Notes: generated by a model from the sequence alone, not told the origin. Positions 11,685 through 49,500 are shown, counted from the stretch's first letter. The stretch is DNA of 64,000 nucleotides from Podarcis muralis (GCF_964188315.1 NC_135661.1:57226001-57290000); one strand, 5' to 3'. Translations and numbers: made by a program.

Positions 11685-12529
11685 CCTTAGTTTTAAAGGC
11701 AGAAGGAATGGGCACCTGGTGTGGTCTGCAGCTTTATTTGATAGACACGTTCAGGCTTCCTCCCAGCTTCTTTCACACATAATGCATCCTTGTTCACTAG
11801 AAGTGGGACACTAGGCACAGATTCAGTCCCTCACTGAGAACTAAGCCAGAGCTGAACTTTCCGTTCCCAAATTACTCCCTCAGAAGCTGGTGGACTCTTT
11901 CATTGGATATATTTAAGAAGAGATTGGATGGCCATCTTCCAGGGATTATTTAGCTGCGATTCCTGCATTGCGGGGGTTGAACTCAAGCCTTTGGGCCCCT
12001 TCCAACTCCACTGGTCTATCATTTTAGGGTTGTTCCTTTGTCCCTCCTTGTAGTTCACTAGGCCCGTTTCTGTTTCAGTTGAGCAGGAAGGAAAAGAAGA
12101 AAGTGCCTTTGTTTGCAGCTACTCAAGGCCTGGCTGTGACAGGCAATTGTGTTCACTAGGTTTCCCCAAACCCACCCGCTTCTTCAGCAGCTGCTGGTAA
12201 ATATCCTGCTACTGCTTCCAGCTCCTGGGTCCTAATGCCTACAGGCAACTTTACACTTGTCTTAAGGGCTATTTGCGTTGGAAAACAGCTATTGTGGCTC
12301 TGAGGCAGGGAGTTGCTGGGTGGAAAAGACAGGCATGCCCTTGCAGGTCTCACATGTGTATGGGACAAGGGGGTTGCAATCTAGTTGGAAAAGGAAATAA
12401 AACCATCCAAGGTTGCTGCAGCGGTGGTGGTGGCGGCCGCTGCTCTGGCAAGCCACAAGGGAAGACCATAACATAACCCACCGCACGTAACACCTGTGTC
12501 TTCTGAAGTCTCTGTTTGGGGAAGGACCA

Positions 12530-17130: not shown

Positions 17131-17958
17131 ACTGGAAGCTCATCAAGGGAAGGTGCTGCCCTCCTGTAAAAGCATCAGGCACACAGGCGGTACCACACAG
17201 AAATAATGGGGAGGGGGATGGTCTTCCCTGCAGGTCTTCTCCTTTTGCTGGGTTTGTTCAGCACTCCATGGCTCAAAATTGGCAGCATCTGTTCCGGGAG
17301 ATGCTGCAGGGCTGGGATCTAGCAACAGCCTGAGGCAGTGAAGCTGTTGTGGGGGACGGGGGACAGCAGCCTGTGCATAATCACTCTCATGGAGAAAGAC
17401 CCAGCTGACTTTCCCCAGGAAGGTCTTCTGTTCAGACTCCCTCCAGTGGATGTTACAGTACTTGGGGCAGCTCAAGTTCTGTCCTTGCAGACTGTGACCA
17501 GATCCAGATCCAGATGCTCAGGTGGCTCCAACTATACTGGCCAGGTGGAGAAATGGCTTGACGGTCCAAAGCATCTCCTTCTGCCTTTTCTCCTTGAGTG
17601 AGCCACTTTTCAAGGGCCCACTGTCCTGACTATTGTGGGCACACCTGATGCCCTGATCAGATTCCTAGCCAGTGACTGCACAGCCTCATTACCTGGATGA
17701 GAAGACCAAAACACAGGAATGTGCAAAGGGCCTCTGCTTCATTCAACCCATTGCTCCTAGTGAACTGAGATAGGTCCTGCCAAGACCCTGTTTAAGATCC
17801 TTTCTACAGCTTTGTCTTGAGTTTAGGGGTTGCTTGCATCACCTCCTTGTGCTCGGGGTGTGCGTGCTGAGAAATCTGAGAAATACATACCGTACATATG
17901 TTTCTTCCCTGTTGCCCACTCTGCAGGGTCCTACAGAATTAGATCCCCTTGGCTCAAG

Positions 17959-19852
17959 ATGGCAAGTCCCAACAACCACCGGATTCTCCCAGCCCAGGGT
18001 AAGAGGCTTCATTGTGGTGGAATTTCTGGCAGAGGTGACAGCCTGACATGTGACTCGCTCCTTGGCGAAGGCGATATATGGAAGACACAGAGTGTCTCCT
18101 GAGCAAGTCAGAGGAACCGGGGTAGTATTGGGGACTGGCTGTTTGTTGGATTTCTCCTTGCCCAACCATCTGGTAAAAGAACAAGAGCCCCACCCTAAAG
18201 TACTGACGGAGGAAGAGGGGGCAGGGGGAGTGCACCACCCCCGACACCACGATCCTGGTGGGGTGCCATCGTGGCTGCCCCCCCCTGCACTGGCTGCCAT
18301 GCCCCCACAGGCGATGCGCCACGCCCCCGGGACCCGCGCCAGCCACGCCCCCGCCTGCTCTCTGCCCCTGGTGCCAGAGCATGAATCTCCGCCACTGCCC
18401 TAAAGAACAGTGGTCTGCAATGGGATCCATCAATGCCTTGATGTGACATTGTCTGATGGTCCTCTACAGTGAGCTGTGGGTGACAGAGGTGCCTTTTCTC
18501 TCTGCCATTCAAGAAACAAACATGGTCTTTCTTTTTTCCATCTGCAGGCATCTTTCTCCTCTGGGTTGCTCTGCACTTCAGCACATGGACCTCTTGTATA
18601 CTGGCAGGTGAGAGGGCTGGCTGGCTATGTGTTGGGAAGGGGAAGGTTCTGTGTAGGGAGGCCCATGGGGCACAGGCTGAGGAAGAGGCGGACCCTTGGA
18701 ACTTCCTGCCACTTTCCTCTGTGCAGCTCCTGAAACATAAGCATGGCTTCAGTTGCAGTCAAGGCTTCTGCTCCACTTAGGAAACCATTAGCTGGAGCAG
18801 AGACTTCCTTGGCTCCCACACCAAGGGATTTACTAACCTCTTGCTTCCTCTTTCAGAGCCTGGGCCCATTTCAGGAGCACCCCTCATCTCCAGCAGCTCA
18901 GCGAACAGCACAGGCATGATGAACGTAAGAAACCGACCCAGCATGACACTGCTGTGTGTGGGGTGTGTGTGTTGGGCATTTCCCAGTTGGAGGAGATGGG
19001 ATGGGAATGTCTGGGTGGGAGGCAGGCATGGAGTGTCTGCTCCTGGCTGGCTGCAGCCCTTTGGTGAGAAGGAACATCCTGCAGATGGAAGTATTCATTG
19101 GGCAGGCTTGTATGTGAGAGAGATGAACCAGGAAATGATTCAATTGGGAGGCCCAAGTGGAGGTGGCAGGTCAGGTCCAGGTCGCAGGAGAGAGGTGCTA
19201 CTAGGGCAGAGGATGCTTGGCCTGGGGAGGCCAGGGCAGCTGTCTAGCTTTCTTGCCATGAAGGTTCAGCTCCATCTCCTTCTGCAGCTCACATGCCAGA
19301 GCTTCCAGTGTTCCGGGGAGCGATGCTACCATGACGAAGCTCATGGGAACAGCACAGAGACCTGCCACAATGCAACACACTGCGAGGTAGGGAGCCTGGA
19401 GGTGTTATTTGAGCTGGGTTGTTTTAAACAGTTTTAAAGTGTTATATGTCAATTTGTATTTTGTATTTTTTGGGTTTTATAAAGTTGATTAATACTCTAC
19501 AGCCTTTTAAAATGTGTTTGGGAGGTATTGTTCTGATGTTTTTGTTTTAACTATTGACTTGTGTTTTTACCTTGTATTTTTATCCTGTGAACCACCATAA
19601 GATCTTGAAGGGTAGTACAGTGGTACCTCGGGTTAAGTACTCAGTTCATTCTGGAGGTCCGTTCTTAACCTGAAACTGTTTTTAACCTGAAGCACCACTT
19701 TAGCTAATGGGGCCTCCTGCTGCTGCTGCGTCGCCAGAGCACGATTTCTGTTCTCATCCTGAAGCAAAGCTCTTAACCCGAGGTATTATTTCTGGGTTAG
19801 TGGAGTCTGTAACCTGAAGCGTATGTAACCCAAGGTACCACTGTATATAAAC

Positions 19853-19907
<55 letters not shown>

Positions 19908-21711
19908 TATAAATAAAGCCCCCCCCAAGAGGCTGCAAAGGACTGTGGGTGGCCTTGGCTTCTGTCCTGGACTGTGTCCTTACAAGTGTGGGAGGGATCA
20001 GCTACGGTGGGGCTGTGGGGTCCAGCCACTCCTGCTTCTCTGCATGGATCATAATGCAGCTATGGTCAGTTGTCAGCCTTGCCCTGCTAACCCTTTGGTG
20101 GGTCTTGCAGCTCTTCCGCCTCAACACTACCAGCTACACAGCCCGGTGCAGCAGTGAGTGTGGGGGAATCAACGGCACCGACATGTGCATGCAGAATGGC
20201 ACCATCAGAATGAACTTGTGTTCAATGGAGTGCTGTAGCTCCCCAAACTGCCTGCTTCTCAATGCTACAGCCTACGGTAAGCTCCCCCAATGGGAGGCCT
20301 CTTAGGATGCTCTGCTTGGCAGGATTCCTTCTCCCTGGGGAGGCTGAGCTGACCTATGGGGCATCTGGGCAGAGCTGCCTTCTCAGAGAGGCCTTTCTTG
20401 GCTCTGGGGACTCAGTCCCTGGAGCAGCTGAAGGGCAGGATTTCAGCCCACAGCCAGCCTCTCTCTGACCTGCCAGTCTGGCATGACAGCTTCTCCCGTC
20501 GGTCAAGAGGTCCTGGGGGCCTCAGCCAGCTCCTCCATCTCTCATGTCTGTTCTAGGTGACCTGCCGCCCACCACCACGCCGGCGCCCACCACTACCACC
20601 ACCAAAGCACCCCCCAAAAATGTAGGTGTCACTTCATGTTCTGGCAGGGATGGCTTGTTTGCTGGCAGGGCAAGTGGGCAGGTGGCATTCTCAGAGTGGG
20701 TGGGTGGATGAGTGGGAAATGGGATCCTGGTTCTTTCCCTATGTCCTCCCTCCTGCCCAACACCAGGAGTGCCCAACACCAGGGGTGTCTGGGGATTTGG
20801 CTGAATCCAGCGCACAGTCCTGGTGTCCACAATTCAATGGCCTGCCTCTCTTTCCTCCCTCGCTCCCTCTGTAGGGGAAAGTGTGCTCAAGCTTCACCTG
20901 CCACGGAGAAGGATGCTACAAGGGACAGAAGCACGCAGCCGGCTGCATCGTGGGCTTTGATTTTTGCGAGGTACCATTCCTGAAATGATAACACCCCCCC
21001 TCCAAACGCCCATGTCCTTGTTCTGCCCTCTGAATGGAGCCCTGTTGCTGCAGTGCCTTAGAATGCAGCTTGAGCCTTGTAAGCCTTACAAACCAGCAGG
21101 AGCTGCGTGCCTCAAGAGAGCAGCAGGTACCACAAGGCAAAGTGGAAGGGGGTGGGCAGTGGCCAAGTGCACACCCTGATGGCTGTCGTGAGGATTCTGA
21201 AATGAGAACAGTTAGCTAAATGGGTGCTGGAGCATCCAATGGAAGTCTGTTTTTTAGGACAAGAGATCTGAAGTCTGAGGAAGAAAGGGGGAGGCCCACC
21301 AAATCCCCATTGGCAGCCCTGTGTGCCAGCTGCCCTCTGCAGGCACCCTGCTTGATTCTGGGGGGGGGGGCACAGCACCAGTGCCTGAAACAGCAGCCAA
21401 ACTGGTCCCTGCATCTGCTACTTGTGTGGGCCAATGCTTGCTCCTTTCTCTCCTTCCAGATGAAGAAAACCGGCCCCCACTTTGTGGCTGGATGCAGCAA
21501 AGTCTGCAAAACAGCTGGCCCGCCCTGCTCTGCGGGGTCCAAGGTGCCCTGCTACCAGGAGTGCTGCCCGGCGATGCCCAAGACCAGCTGCCTGAAACTG
21601 GATGGCAAAGTGCACTTCAATGGGGCCAAGCAAGTGGCAGCCCTCACCCCCCTGCTCCACCTGCTGGTGTGTGCAGCCGTCCTCAGCCTGAACTATGCTA
21701 TCCTGTTCTAG
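17959..21711 (+). CDS. Uncharacterised GPI-anchored tandem Ly6/uPAR (three-finger)-like protein, 281 aa, 8 coding exons
   Basis: GT-AG exons 17959-17998, 18548-18607, 18857-18924, 19288-19386, 20111-20276, 20557-20621, 20875-20970 and 21460-21711 total 846 nt with all phases compatible. Protein: MASPNNHRILPAQGIFLLWVALHFSTWTSCILA (signal) EPGPISGAPLISSSSANSTGMMN LTCQSFQCSGERCYHDEAHGNSTETCHNATHCELFRLNTTSYTARCSSECGGINGTDMCMQNGTIRMNLCSMECCSSPNCLLLNATAY GDLPPTTTPAPTTTTTKAPPKN GKVCSSFTCHGEGCYKGQKHAAGCIVGFDFCEMKKTGPHFVAGCSKVCKTAGPPCSAGSKVPCYQECCPAMPKTSCLKLDGKVHFNGAKQVAALTPLLHLLVCAAVLSLNYAILF*. Confidence 0.9.
18201..18397. mobile_element. hAT-type MITE in intron 1 of the LU-like gene
   Basis: Perfect 8-bp TSD CCCTAAAG (18193-18200 and 18398-18405). 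Right end CTCCGCCACTG; left end TACTGACGGAG is a degenerate TIR. Confidence 0.75.
19618..19843. mobile_element. Tc1/mariner (Tigger/pogo-like) MITE
   Basis: TIR CAGTGGTACCTCGGGTTA...TAACCCAAGGTACCACTG with TA on both sides. Same family as the copies at 30476 and 36941 (this copy is inverted relative to them). Confidence 0.85.
19853..19902. repeat. (AAT)n microsatellite
   Basis: Direct reading of the sequence. Confidence 0.95.
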
Positions 21712-21957
21712 GCCAGGCACGACTGAAGCTGAGCTGGCCTGTTCGGGTCCTTAGGTGGTGGCAAAAAAGCAACTCTCCCTTCTCTGCCTCTCTGTCTCTC
21801 TCCCTCTCTATGCCTTGGGGAATCCACTTGGTTTGGGCCTTTCTCACAAGGCATCCAACAAATGCCTTCCCCCCTTCTCTCCTTTTTCTTCCAGGGCCAA
21901 GTGATTTATGAACCTTTGGGCTGTGTGAGCTTGCGATAAATGGTGATATATAAATCG

Positions 21958-21963
21958 AATAAA
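21958..21963 (+). terminator. Probable polyadenylation signal of the LU-like gene
   Basis: AATAAA about 250 nt after the TAG at 21711. Confidence 0.6.
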
Positions 21964-22899
21964 TAATAATAATAATTTAGCTCAGACCTACATAATCAAG
22001 AGCCACTTTCCTTCCCTCTGCCCTGGTCTGAAAGATGGCAGGAGATCTGAGCTGGAGCCAGCAGGTCACAAGCCTGATCCTGGGGGCAAGTGACAGAAGC
22101 GACAGGAATTTGCTTTTGGATTAAATAGGGAAGGGTGTCCTATCTATCCAGGAGCAGCTATTTAACTGTTTTGAGGCCGTTCCAGGTTTGCAGAAAGCTG
22201 AAGGTTGCCTTCTGTTATTTGGCAGAGTCCCAAGAGCTGTACAGGAAGCCTCTTATCAGGGTAGAGAGGTGAAGGAAAGGGGGAGAGCCCCCCCCCCACC
22301 TTGTTCTTTAAACTAGAGTGGCCCTGCTCTCTCCTGGCGTCCTGCTAGCTGGCTCTGTGAACCCCCTTCTGGCTCTGCAGGGGTGATGGGCCAAGGGAGA
22401 ACCTGGGGGGGGGGTTGCTTATTCCCCCTAAAGGGCCTTGCTGCTATGGCTGATCTTAGCTGCTGCCTTAAATGAGGGACCCACTTTCTCACTGAGCTGC
22501 CTGTCGTTCCCCACCCACCGCCCCACTCCTAGTATCAGAAATGTTTCTCTTGCCTAAAAATTGCAAATAAATCTATTTAACTAGATGAGCAGTGTATGTG
22601 TGTGTTTAAAGTCCATTTCTCTGCCCTGGGCCCGCACCGTGTCTCCTCCACAGAGGCAGAAAACCCACCCAAGGTTTGCAATCACTGCAACAGGTAACTG
22701 CAAAGATCAGCGGTTGTTGACCCAAGGGGGTCTGGCCCTAGGCGCCTCCGGCTCCTTGCTTTTCCGAGGTCGCCTGCCATCCTGGGCCTTCTCAGGCGGC
22801 CACACTACGTCCTGAGGGGGGGGGGCTGCATCTTCCAGGGGGAGCTGGCATTATGGAAGAGGAAGCCTGGCAAGCTGCGCTGCCTTGCTCAACTGGCAG

Positions 22900-46596: not shown

Positions 46597-49500
46597 ATGG
46601 GGGAAAACAGTCCTGAGAATGTCATCTATTACAAAGTGGAGGAAGATGACTTGGCCCAGGATGATAAACTGTTGTGGTTTGTGGACAAGAATGGCCTTGT
46701 CCCATCCTCATCCAGGACAGTGTATGACAGAACAACAGTCCTCATTGAACAAGACCGAGGGCCATTGGAGGACGAGGAGGATGAAGGGCAGTGTGGGGAT
46801 CACTTGCCTTTTCTACCTGATGGTCACGAGGACAGATTTCCTTTGATAGCTGACCATGAAGGAATGTCCCAGGGTTATGTCCAGCACATTATTTCTCCGG
46901 ATCAGATTCATCTGACGATCAATCCTGGCTCAACTCCTATGCCACGAAACATTGAAGGAGCCACCCTTACTTTGCAGTCAGAGTGCCCTGAGACGAAACT
47001 GAAAGAAGTAAGTAGCAAACTCAAATCTAATCCTGCTCCTCTATTGGGAGGCCTGTCATATGACTGTATGAAAGCCTGTTTTGCTTTTTGTGTTGCATTT
47101 AAAACGGGGTCAGTTTTGGAAACGTCATCCGAAAACGCCCGAGAAAACAAATTGCCTGATTCTGTAGTGTTTGGCCTTTTCCCATATTTGTGTCACAGAG
47201 GCCATGCCTAAGCTGATCCTGCTCTTCAAGTCAGGTTTATATAATACAAAAATGCACTGTTACACTTCCAAGTATCTTTAGGGAAAGGGTGAGCAGAGCT
47301 TCTCAGATTTTGGGGGTGAGAGAGAGCAGTGTTTCCCGTTTATAGCAGGCATATAGACTTGCCTGCTTTCCATACTAAGCAGTGCATGGTTGAAGGGAAG
47401 CTTTTGCTACTTTTTCATGCTATACACCCTGCCTTGGGAGTTTTCACAATAGTAGAACATTATCTCTAGGGCTGTGTGTGCCATGTGTGATTTTTTAAAT
47501 AAAAGTTTCTGCACTGGGATAGAAAAACAAAAAATCTATGACCAATATACATTATTCAGGTTTGCGCTGAATGCCACATCCTGTAATAATGTATAGTCAA
47601 CACTGTGCATAGGTGAGACAGAACAGACAATAACAGAGAGAAGCTCCGAACTGTCTGAGTTTTGATTTATGGATTAGCAGGATGGTGTATGCTTTAGAGA
47701 AGCAGCTAAGAGATACTTCTTGACTTAAATCTTGGAATGACTCAGAAAATAATGAAGAGGGCCTTTAGTTTTTGGAGTGCTGATAATGAACAAAATTCCT
47801 CAAGCTTTATTTTTTATGAATTAATCTATCTTGAATTTAAGGATGTTTTATTTTTATTTGTTCAATTTATAAACAAGCAGGCACATACATTGAAACTGGC
47901 TTAAGATTTAAAAAACAGAAAAATCCTATTTTTAAAAGGCAAGATTTAAACATTACACCCACTCAAGGCCACAGATAATTAAGAGCCAAAGTCCTAGCGA
48001 AAAACAATTGTTTTGCCTGACATTTAAATCAGTTATCATACATCCAGTTAAGGGAACCACCCATTAATGGTGCGTCAGTCTTATCTGAATTGTGCTTCGG
48101 TTTATTGGCTCTCATCAAGACCATTACCAAGGCAAGACATTGGTTCAGCACATCCACTGCCGTACCCACAAATGTAAAGGAGAAGTAGAACTTCTCTTAT
48201 AAGGAAGCAGATTGAAACTTTGCACAAACAGAATCCTGAGAAAATGGGTTTAGAAGATTTTTTCTGGCCCTTTGAAATCGTAGGTTGCAGTTTTAAGTCT
48301 GCAGATCTTAAAGCTGCTCTTTTGGTTTCAATATGACGGCCACAGTGTGGTTTGATGACTTCAGCCATATATAAGCCCAGTACTTCTGCAGATTTAGAGA
48401 AGGGCAGAAAGTTCTTTTGATATACCTTTTGCCTTTTCAAAAAAAATTAGGAATATTGAGACTGACTTAACTTTAGGTATAATAGAATAACTATCTCTTT
48501 CTCCTGCTCTTATGGAGGACAAAATCCACCAGGAGCTTCTAGTCTATTGCCTTATGTACAAATGATAATTGAAAGCAGCTGCTTGGGAAATGATATTGGA
48601 AGAATACATATTTGTGTATGTCTGAGAATTACAGAAGGGGGCAGCATTTAATAACCTATCCTGAAGGAAAACTACTGTTCACATTTGATTATGACAGGGC
48701 CTTCTCCATGCTGGTGGACTCCCAACTCTCATGTCACCCCTGGCCATTGAGCAGGCTGGCTGCTGGAAATTAGAGTCCAGCACACAGGTGTTCCCCACCC
48801 ACCCCGGTGTGAATAATACTTTGTTTAGTTGTAAATTAACGTAACTTAGAAGTCACTGTTTGGGAAATATATGAATTAGTATCAATGGGAAACTTGATTT
48901 GATGCATATGCCCCTTTGTCAGAGTCCCATTGGCACATTCTGTTGCCAACCTGATCTGACCTGCACATGGAGAACAAGCGCACCCTGTGCCAAAGGGAGC
49001 TTCCTTTGAAAGTTGTGCTGCTGACTGCTTTGGGAACCTGGCCAGAACCACAAAGTCTGGTCATCAACCCCACAGCTGGCAATGGGAGTACAGGAGCAGC
49101 ACATGGCAACCTTGGCAAAAAACTAAGTTAAGCCACTGAAATTAATAATGTTGCATCAGTTGCCAAAAAAGGTCTCTGACCCTTCAGGTATCCAGAAAGA
49201 TTACATTCTGCGGTTGTGCCTGTTTGTAAGTGGCACCAAACTGGGCAAAGTCTGAAGAGCTGAATAAAATATCTGAGCCTCAAGCACTCCAGGGTCCATT
49301 GAGAAAGGGACAACAGTGGCGGCAGCAGGGTCTTTTCTCCTTGGAAACTGCACAGTCCACAAGGGAGTGATAGCAGCTCAACCAGAAGGAGTAGCAGCAA
49401 CATCTGTGAAGAGGGAGTTGGGGAGTGCTTTGCAGGGAATTGGGGGATGCACTTCTCTGCCTTAGGCCTCTCAAAGCTAGGAAGGAAACTCTAGTCTCTC

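Follow-up and report, generated by a model that had tools for sequence, protein, structure and literature searches.

Among the proteins built from Ly6/uPAR (LU) domains are receptors and modulators of proteolysis, complement, lipolysis, nicotinic and Wnt signalling, and fertilisation. The canonical LU domain has 8-10 cysteines, beginning with L-x-C-x-x-C and ending in CC-x4-CN, and PLAUR/LY6 genes use two exons for each domain. C4.4A has a segment rich in Ser, Thr and Pro (STP) after its second domain, and the PLAUR/LYPD3 cluster lies at human 19q13. TEX101, LYPD4, uPAR and CD177 are glycosylphosphatidylinositol (GPI) proteins that serve as binding partners or chaperones of surface proteins, and the gamma-type phospholipase A2 inhibitors (PLI-gamma) are secreted plasma proteins. 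To our knowledge, almost everything understood about LU function comes from genes that human and mouse possess. This work concerns LOC114601754, a gene lying between SF3A3 and INPP5B in a 64,000-nucleotide stretch of the wall lizard Podarcis muralis (NC_135661.1:57226001-57290000). We call this whole stretch the window and count all positions from its first letter. We believe, with a probability of roughly 0.78, that LOC114601754 is intact and is the lizard orthologue of an unnamed family of GPI-anchored glycoproteins with two LU domains, working by the binding mechanism that we infer below.

LOC114601754 is an intact, transcribed gene that is already in RefSeq; it is not a newly found gene that annotation had missed. 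When its eight plus-strand exons, between 17959 and 21711, are joined by script they stay in frame for 846 nt (281 codons and a TAG), with AG...GT at every internal exon boundary. The spliced product is identical at 281 of 281 residues to RefSeq XP_028595072.2, which carries the label "uncharacterized protein LOC114601754" (Podarcis muralis). The RefSeq gene model is independent of ours, and this agreement is far beyond chance. The product has 26 cysteines and 8 N-X-S/T sequons. These are the parts of the gene:

17700-17958, plus strand: 5' untranslated region (UTR), minimum extent; RNA-derived contigs of runs X1 and X5 reach exon 1 colinearly from 17700 or a point further upstream, those of X1 continuing with the 17998/18548 splice.
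17959-17998, plus strand: coding part of exon 1, start codon and n-region of the putative signal peptide (MASPNNHRILPAQ); GT donor, with the junction to exon 2 in two X1 contigs.
18548-18607, plus strand: exon 2, putative signal-peptide hydrophobic core and cleavage region; AG/GT sites, and the top N-terminal hydropathy window, GIFLLWVALHF.
18857-18924, plus strand: exon 3, a short Ser/Pro-rich N-terminal stalk, predicted to be N-glycosylated, seen in the alignment; predicted local distance difference test (pLDDT) below 50, and greatly expanded in birds and fishes.
19288-19386, plus strand: exon 4, first third of LU-like domain 1, Cys 1-5, ending ...HCE; junction to exon 5 in X1, with its phase-0 intron placed as in domain 2.
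20111-20276, plus strand: exon 5, remainder of domain 1, Cys 6-12, ECC-x4-C-LLLN; junction to exon 6 in X1 and X5.
20557-20621, plus strand: exon 6, Thr/Pro-rich interdomain linker, a probable O-glycosylated stalk; pLDDT below 50 over residues 148-159, with a T/P/S-rich spacer in all orthologues.
20875-20970, plus strand: exon 7, first third of LU-like domain 2, Cys 1-5, ending ...FCE; junction to exon 8 in X1.
21460-21711, plus strand: coding part of exon 8, remainder of domain 2, putative GPI-attachment signal and stop codon; domain 2 modelled alone has pLDDT 86.
21712-21980, plus strand: putative 3' UTR with AATAAA at 21958-21963; RNA contigs have no depth over 21626-21927.

An initial annotation of this DNA had described a complete eight-exon gene with GT-AG introns encoding 281 residues, with a hydrophobic N-terminus, Cys-rich blocks, a Thr/Pro linker, HFNGA followed by a hydrophobic tail, and AATAAA. 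Our joined exons reproduce that gene, and each of these elements is present. As it also stated, the mechanical list of open reading frames (ORFs) in the window contains the gene only as fragments. It called the gene unnamed, which is true of a functional name, but since an identical RefSeq model exists the gene is not unannotated. The start it gave, 17927, is merely an AG upstream of the ATG. One RNA contig enters exon 1 unspliced from a point at or before 17700, and the 5' UTR therefore probably begins upstream of 17927. The interval 17700-17958 is not UTR of SF3A3 because SF3A3 coding sequence ends at about 11540 and its poly(A) signals are at 12396 and 12978.

The gene is transcribed and spliced. 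Our RNA evidence consists of contigs from public runs that we guessed to be RNA, mapped on 17700-22200. X1 contigs are joined GT..AG across intron 1 (17998/18548, in two contigs), intron 4 (19386/20111), intron 5 (20276/20557, a joint that X5 shares) and intron 7 (20970/21460). Intron 6 is roughly bridged by two raw reads of run X22. The junction check proposed in the initial annotation therefore comes out for splicing at four of the seven introns, with the two raw reads for intron 6 in addition. The gene is also under strong purifying selection in lizards. Exons 4-8 align to the Lacerta agilis locus over 225 codons with no indels, giving a nonsynonymous rate (dN) of 0.015, a synonymous rate (dS) of 0.136 and dN/dS of 0.11. 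Five of the seven amino-acid replacements are within the C-terminal GPI signal; the remaining two are in domain 1 and both preserve N-X-T sequons.

The protein has two Cys-rich blocks separated by a Thr/Pro linker, LPPTTTPAPTTTTTKA. The cysteines of domain 1 follow the pattern C-x4-C-x4-C-x12-C-x5-C-x13-C-x3-C-x8-C-x10-C-x3-CC-x4-C and those of domain 2 follow C-x4-C-x4-C-x9-C-x6-C-x12-C-x3-C-x6-C-x7-C-x3-CC-x7-C. These two domains are a tandem internal duplication. When their profiles are compared with hhalign they align over 83 columns with all 12 cysteines in register (probability 99.1%, E 1.8e-18). The duplication is clear only at the profile level; BLASTP of the lizard domains against each other aligns just 18 residues, with an E of 1e-4. 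Gene structure tells the same story, with a phase-0 intron just after the fifth cysteine (C-E|) in both domains. This split is also found by tblastn in bat, Xenopus and skate, so the duplication is older than the divergence of cartilaginous and bony vertebrates. As in PLAUR/LY6 genes, each domain is encoded by two exons, domain 1 by exons 4 and 5 and domain 2 by exons 7 and 8; the flanking intron phases in the lizard gene are 0 ... 1. Domain 2 is the more conserved of the two, with a mean column identity of 57% versus 46% for domain 1.

Both modules are predicted to be three-finger folds. The AlphaFold2 model of the whole protein is all-beta with a mean pLDDT of 73; domain 2 reaches about 90 and the linkers are disordered. 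Foldseek matches this model to experimental structures of C4.4A (E 7e-4), CD177, uPAR, TEX101, Lynx1 and snake toxins, and among Swiss-Prot models to LYPD5 (2.3e-5), TEX101, PINLYP, LYPD4, LYPD3, uPAR and PLI-gamma. Modelled alone, domain 2 is again all-beta (pLDDT 86.4, predicted template modelling score 0.75). Foldseek hits, for domain 2 as for the whole model, are all LU proteins or toxins. An exhaustive comparison of domain 2 with 48,161 PDB representatives, without a prefilter, gave 42 matches, and the first 39 in rank consist solely of three-finger, LU or TGF-beta-receptor ectodomains. GPIHBP1 (73 residues aligned) and Lynx1 (67 residues) lead with Z 7.2, followed by uPAR D3 at 6.7, CD59 and SLURP-2 at 6.5, LYPD6B at 6.2 and C4.4A at 6.0. 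All ten rows of an ESM Atlas shape search are LU families, with template modelling (TM) scores of 0.55-0.67. Language-model features place LYPD6/6B as the nearest named clusters (0.86), which by the tool's own rating is only a lead. We consider the predicted three-finger/LU fold a solid assignment because the hit lists are unanimous, though each score taken alone is middling.

The same matches raise the idea that this is instead an ectodomain like those of the TGF-beta/activin receptors, a decoy or co-receptor without a kinase and outside the LU family. The ectodomains of TGF-beta RII, ALK1, BMPR-IA, ActRII/IIB and AMHR2 are indeed among the structural matches (Z 3.1-5.1), and the CC-x4-C...N motif of domain 1 recalls what we take to be the 'knuckle' motif of those receptors. 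However, LU proteins and toxins rank higher in the domain 2 comparison (Z 5.0-7.2), the matches to the whole protein are exclusively multi-LU proteins, Pfam gives no Activin_recp match, and the protein stops at its hydrophobic tail with neither kinase nor cytoplasmic part. Since both groups belong to one fold superfamily, what is at stake is the subfamily and not the fold. We judge the receptor-ectodomain idea to be quite improbable. LOC114601754 is, in our reading, an uncharacterised member of a divergent subfamily within the known LU superfamily.

The initial annotation had presented the protein as a Ly6/uPAR-like double three-finger protein and had suggested a structure prediction with AlphaFold and Foldseek. 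That prediction is three-finger-like, and the part of the claim that concerns the fold of both modules agrees with it; the part that would place the protein among LU sequences does not fare as well, since no Pfam LU model matches and the cysteines are non-canonical. Membership in the LU superfamily thus comes from the predicted fold, not from sequence models or the canonical cysteine framework.

The family is spread across the jawed vertebrates. A phmmer search with exon 8 alone against 1.84 billion representative sequences gave 35 matches, and the turtle orthologue as query gave 56. There are members in skate, bichir, paddlefish, gar and a sardine; in lungfish, coelacanth, frogs and salamanders; in turtles, crocodilians, many birds and many squamates. 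The mammalian members come from platypus, opossum, five bat genera as well as flying foxes and Rousettus, mole, rabbit, dolphins, orca and hippopotamus. An alignment of 37 sequences has 21 invariant positions, 18 of which are cysteines. Domain 1 has 12 cysteines in 33 of the 37 sequences; domain 2 has 12 in 31 of them, while the other six, all amphibians, have 13. The full set of 24 domain cysteines is retained from skate to rabbit, and it is intact in each of the 8 aligned mammals (platypus, opossum, four bats, mole and rabbit). The models from the whale-hippo lineage are different. In Orcinus, Tursiops, Pseudorca and hippopotamus, the gene models at the SF3A3-INPP5B slot (orca, L005:10001-11837; proteins P0015, P0096, P0115, P0026) have several of the 24 cysteines replaced or missing and contain odd inserted segments. 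This looks like pseudogenisation. Bat and rabbit queries found no primate or rodent protein in a word-indexed search of annotated and predicted proteins, which is not proof of genomic absence. The absence of such a protein may explain why the family has not been studied.

None of the relatives is a named orthologue such as LYPD1-8, PLAUR, TEX101 or CD177; every one is uncharacterized or automatically labelled, and the locus is SF3A3-X-INPP5B. Their names are "uncharacterized" or "hypothetical", or else labels driven by composition: mucin-like, endochitinase A, pfl2, serine-rich adhesin. Ahead of domain 1, lizard proteins have a short region that is repeat-expanded in birds and fishes. Between the signal peptide and domain 1, models from birds, paddlefish and a frog (340-520 aa; P0003, P0008, P0042, P0049, P0016, P0024) have long tandem repeats rich in Ala, Ser, Thr and Val, and it is this expansion that leads automatic pipelines to name the orthologues mucin-, adhesin- or chitinase-like. 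Some relatives in AlphaFold DB bear the automatic name 'UPAR/Ly6 domain-containing protein', and because of this we think a sequence signature outside Pfam may detect the family. Literature searches with the orthologue LOC identifiers, with 'GPI-anchored protein pfl2', and with SF3A3, INPP5B and Ly6 together returned no relevant paper.

Wherever neighbours can be read, the family gene lies directly upstream of INPP5B and downstream of SF3A3. In Lacerta, Hemicordylus, the bat Phyllostomus discolor and orca the order is SF3A3-X-INPP5B, with all three genes on the same strand; in Xenopus tropicalis and opossum X is immediately upstream of INPP5B. The skate locus has no called neighbour within 10 kb. 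In the window itself the plus-strand order is SF3A3, LOC114601754, INPP5B, MTF1, YRDC. SF3A3 has its N-terminus at about 3715 on the same strand, a CpG-rich stretch at 22-24 kb (GC 0.65) marks the region where INPP5B starts, INPP5B exons run from about 31.9 to 43.7 kb, MTF1 begins at 46597 and YRDC at about 62.8 kb. We take the order SF3A3-INPP5B-MTF1-YRDC to match the human 1p34.3 neighbourhood. A separate observation comes from AlphaFold DB cluster entry A0A060VZH8, a 397-residue 'INPP5B PH domain-containing protein' in which residues 155-248 match domain 2 (TM 0.84, E 2e-7). It clearly stems from a gene prediction that ran the LU gene together with the opening exons of INPP5B, and is a hint of the same adjacency in its own species.

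In the initial annotation the gene is located between SF3A3 and INPP5B, away from the classical Ly6 clusters, and both the window and the synteny of other species agree with it. Its other evolutionary proposals need revision. Retention in squamates is too narrow a description for a gene with relatives in skate, ray-finned fishes, lungfish, coelacanth, amphibians, turtles, birds and crocodilians. Loss in mammals fails for mammals as a whole, since platypus, opossum, bats, mole and rabbit have the gene, in the bat at the same slot; what survives of the claim is that primates and rodents gave no protein and that the cetacean and hippopotamus models look decayed. It had also hinted at squamate toxins and phospholipase A2 inhibitors, and we find no support for this link. 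On that account the gene would be a squamate-type three-finger derivative, related to gamma-type inhibitors or toxins, and its product a circulating inhibitor or a venom-related protein. PLI-gamma entries of several snake species are among the fold matches (E 3e-3 to 1e-2; rows 1 and 3 of the Atlas search, TM 0.62-0.63) and both proteins have two LU domains, but the PLI-gamma rows are no better than those of LYPD3/4/5 or TEX101. The gene is not squamate-specific, being in the same slot in frog, bat, opossum and orca with homologues in skate; a membrane-anchor signal is present; neither PLA2_inh (PF02988) nor Toxin_TOLIP matches in Pfam; and selection is strongly purifying, not diversifying. 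An origin of this kind seems to us very improbable.

Taken together, we slightly favour a broader proposal on top of the double-LU orthologue reading: that these genes form a distinct and ancient LU branch, a GPI glycoprotein with two 12-Cys domains that has stood beside INPP5B since early jawed vertebrates, is invisible to Pfam, has been lost or is unannotated in primates and rodents and for that reason unstudied, and has decayed independently in cetaceans and hippopotamuses.

The C-terminus is the basis for the proposed GPI anchor. After HFNGA comes the spacer KQVAALTP and then LLHLLVCAAVLSLNYAILF. The omega candidate is N253 in N253-G-A, followed by an 8-residue spacer and 19 hydrophobic residues that run to the last residue, and there is no K, R, D or E in the last 22. 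At the other end, residues 14-24 (GIFLLWVALHF) would be the hydrophobic core of the signal peptide. Checking by hand we found what is expected of a GPI-anchored protein: a signal peptide, small residues at omega and omega+2, a polar spacer of about 5-10 residues, a hydrophobic end and no cytoplasmic domain. By the same manual criteria 15 orthologues have this GPI-signal layout.

Several results count against our reading of LOC114601754. The putative signal peptide and GPI signal were judged by rule-of-thumb criteria. Pfam finds no LU, toxin or receptor family in the four domain exons, in the full protein, in 8 orthologues or in the 37 aligned members, even at E<=10, the models at issue being UPAR_LY6 (PF00021), UPAR_LY6_2 (PF16975), Toxin_TOLIP (PF00087) and Activin_recp (PF01064). 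Profiles of the family and of domain 2 have no match at E<=10 among all PDB sequences. With domain 2 alone the best Foldseek E is only 5e-2, and the highest Z, 7.2, comes from predicted models and is below the tool's value of 8, under which a match may reflect a common arrangement. The 12-Cys domains, with their C-x4-C-x4-C start and the CC-x7-C of domain 2, depart from the canonical LU framework; only the CC-x4-C of domain 1 fits the canonical end, and its Asn is 4 residues past the cysteine (CLLLN). On the RNA side, contig depth over the gene is low (2-14x), many of the low-depth contigs show no splicing, as pre-mRNA or carried-over DNA would, raw RNA-seq run X22 has almost no coverage of the gene, and none of the contigs listed has a junction for intron 2 or intron 3.

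These points feed two further alternatives. The manual GPI call leaves room for a transmembrane or secreted protein, whose C-terminal stretch would be a membrane anchor or would be removed with no lipid attached. AlphaFold draws residues 260-280 as a helix, and some orthologue models carry a few extra residues past the hydrophobic stretch, such as ...SAGHN in Lacerta. But the P. muralis protein ends at its hydrophobic stretch with no cytoplasmic residues or charges, and from amphibians to mammals the small triad N-G/R/Q-A is conserved 8-10 residues ahead of that stretch. Across 15 orthologues the final 22 residues include 0-3 charged ones, and the concentration of lizard-lizard substitutions in the tail (5 of 7) is what one expects of a signal that is removed. 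We regard a transmembrane or secreted protein as unlikely.

The other alternative is that the locus is non-functional in the lizard, whether as ORFs chained together by chance, as an artefact of annotation or as a pseudogene in decay. It can draw on the low depth, the unspliced contigs, the uncovered 3' UTR and the nearly empty X22, as well as on the cetacean and hippopotamus models, which are clearly degraded. Against it stand an open frame over eight exons with canonical sites, four junctions in spliced contigs, dN/dS of 0.11, a complete set of domain cysteines (24 of 24) from skate to rabbit, and conserved intron positions and synteny. We find this the hardest of the alternatives to credit, and all of them are less likely than an intact orthologue of the double-LU family.

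Some other observations on the locus deserve mention. At the boundaries of exons 2 and 3, contigs of X1, X5 and X7 continue without splicing (18516-19091, which takes in both exons and intron 2). In Podarcis raffonei, the isoforms X1/X2 read through intron 2 in frame. Either intron 2 is retained or the contigs come from pre-mRNA. Exon 2 is skipped in the Zootoca vivipara model, which is therefore missing the signal-peptide core; an error of annotation is the probable cause. Intron 4 contains a SINE-like interspersed repeat at 19610-19840, followed by an (AAT)n microsatellite at 19846-19900. RNA contig depth over this repeat is 10^4-10^5, compared with 2-14 over the gene, with many variant letters, inverted joints and loose ends. 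It is a highly repeated, transcribed family of genomic elements and is outside the message of the gene. Upstream of SF3A3 there is a 140-aa ORF at 18-440 on the plus strand with a Cys/His-rich motif (...CWKCKETEGTFFHLWWTCP...), which presumably resembles the C-terminal end of the ORF2 of a non-LTR retrotransposon; it is probably a LINE fragment.

How the protein might work can be proposed because of its analogy with TEX101, LYPD4, uPAR and CD177. The precursor would consist of a cleavable signal peptide, a short glycosylated stalk, a heavily N-glycosylated domain 1 with 12 cysteines, the Thr/Pro linker, domain 2 with 12 cysteines, and the GPI signal. It would be imported into the endoplasmic reticulum, where the signal peptide would be cleaved and domain 1 and the stalks glycosylated. 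Six disulfides in each domain may lock the modules into three-finger beta folds, and the transamidase would replace the hydrophobic tail with a GPI anchor, near N253. The mature, non-enzymatic glycoprotein would then sit on the outer leaflet of the membrane, and its finger loops may bind an extracellular ligand or a neighbouring membrane receptor, as in C4.4A/LYPD3, LYPD5, TEX101, LYPD4, uPAR and CD177. From what is established about this architecture we infer GPI anchoring, glycosylation and a binding or co-receptor role.

The LOC114601754 family occupies a fixed slot between SF3A3 and INPP5B and is under strong constraint in lizards, but it lacks a name and a Pfam model, and no paper treats it. 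This makes it a testable orphan. Its patchy fate in mammals offers a natural loss-of-function series: intact in a monotreme, a marsupial, bats, mole and rabbit; broken in whales and hippopotamus; not found in primates and rodents. There is also a lesson for annotation, which is that an entire LU subfamily escapes current domain models. If the family is truly an ancient LU branch, it is an orphan surface receptor or ligand of vertebrates, and its repeated loss in some mammals would mark a dispensable function, possibly one linked to environment or reproduction.

It remains to set the lizard protein beside the known systems. Like PLI-gamma and PINLYP it has two LU domains, and both are among its fold matches, but a GPI-type tail, the lack of a PLA2_inh match and a distribution throughout the vertebrates set it apart from PLI-gamma. 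GPIHBP1, Lynx1, CD59, SLURP-2 and LYPD6/LYPD6B are the best single-domain matches to domain 2, over 67-74 residues; unlike the lizard protein they have one domain and match UPAR_LY6, UPAR_LY6_2 or Toxin_TOLIP in Pfam. With TEX101, LYPD4, uPAR and CD177 it shares a multi-LU architecture and a GPI-type tail, and they recur among its structural matches. This is likeness at the level of fold only, and the whole-model TM by query is about 0.2 because the orientation of the domains is undefined. The closest comparison is with C4.4A (LYPD3) and Haldisin (LYPD5). The lizard protein has no detectable sequence similarity to either, and is set apart by its 12 cysteines per domain and C-x4-C-x4-C spacing. 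Its STP-rich segments are between the domains and at the N-terminus, unlike that of C4.4A, and its locus adjoins INPP5B, unlike the PLAUR/LYPD3 cluster, with no primate or rodent orthologue found. Nevertheless, it has the same combination of signal peptide, two tandem three-finger domains, STP-rich region for O-glycosylation and GPI-type tail as C4.4A and LYPD5, and these are the best structural matches to the whole model (C4.4A structures 6ion/6iom, E 7e-4 to 2e-3; LYPD5, 2.3e-5; LYPD3, 4e-4 to 1e-3).

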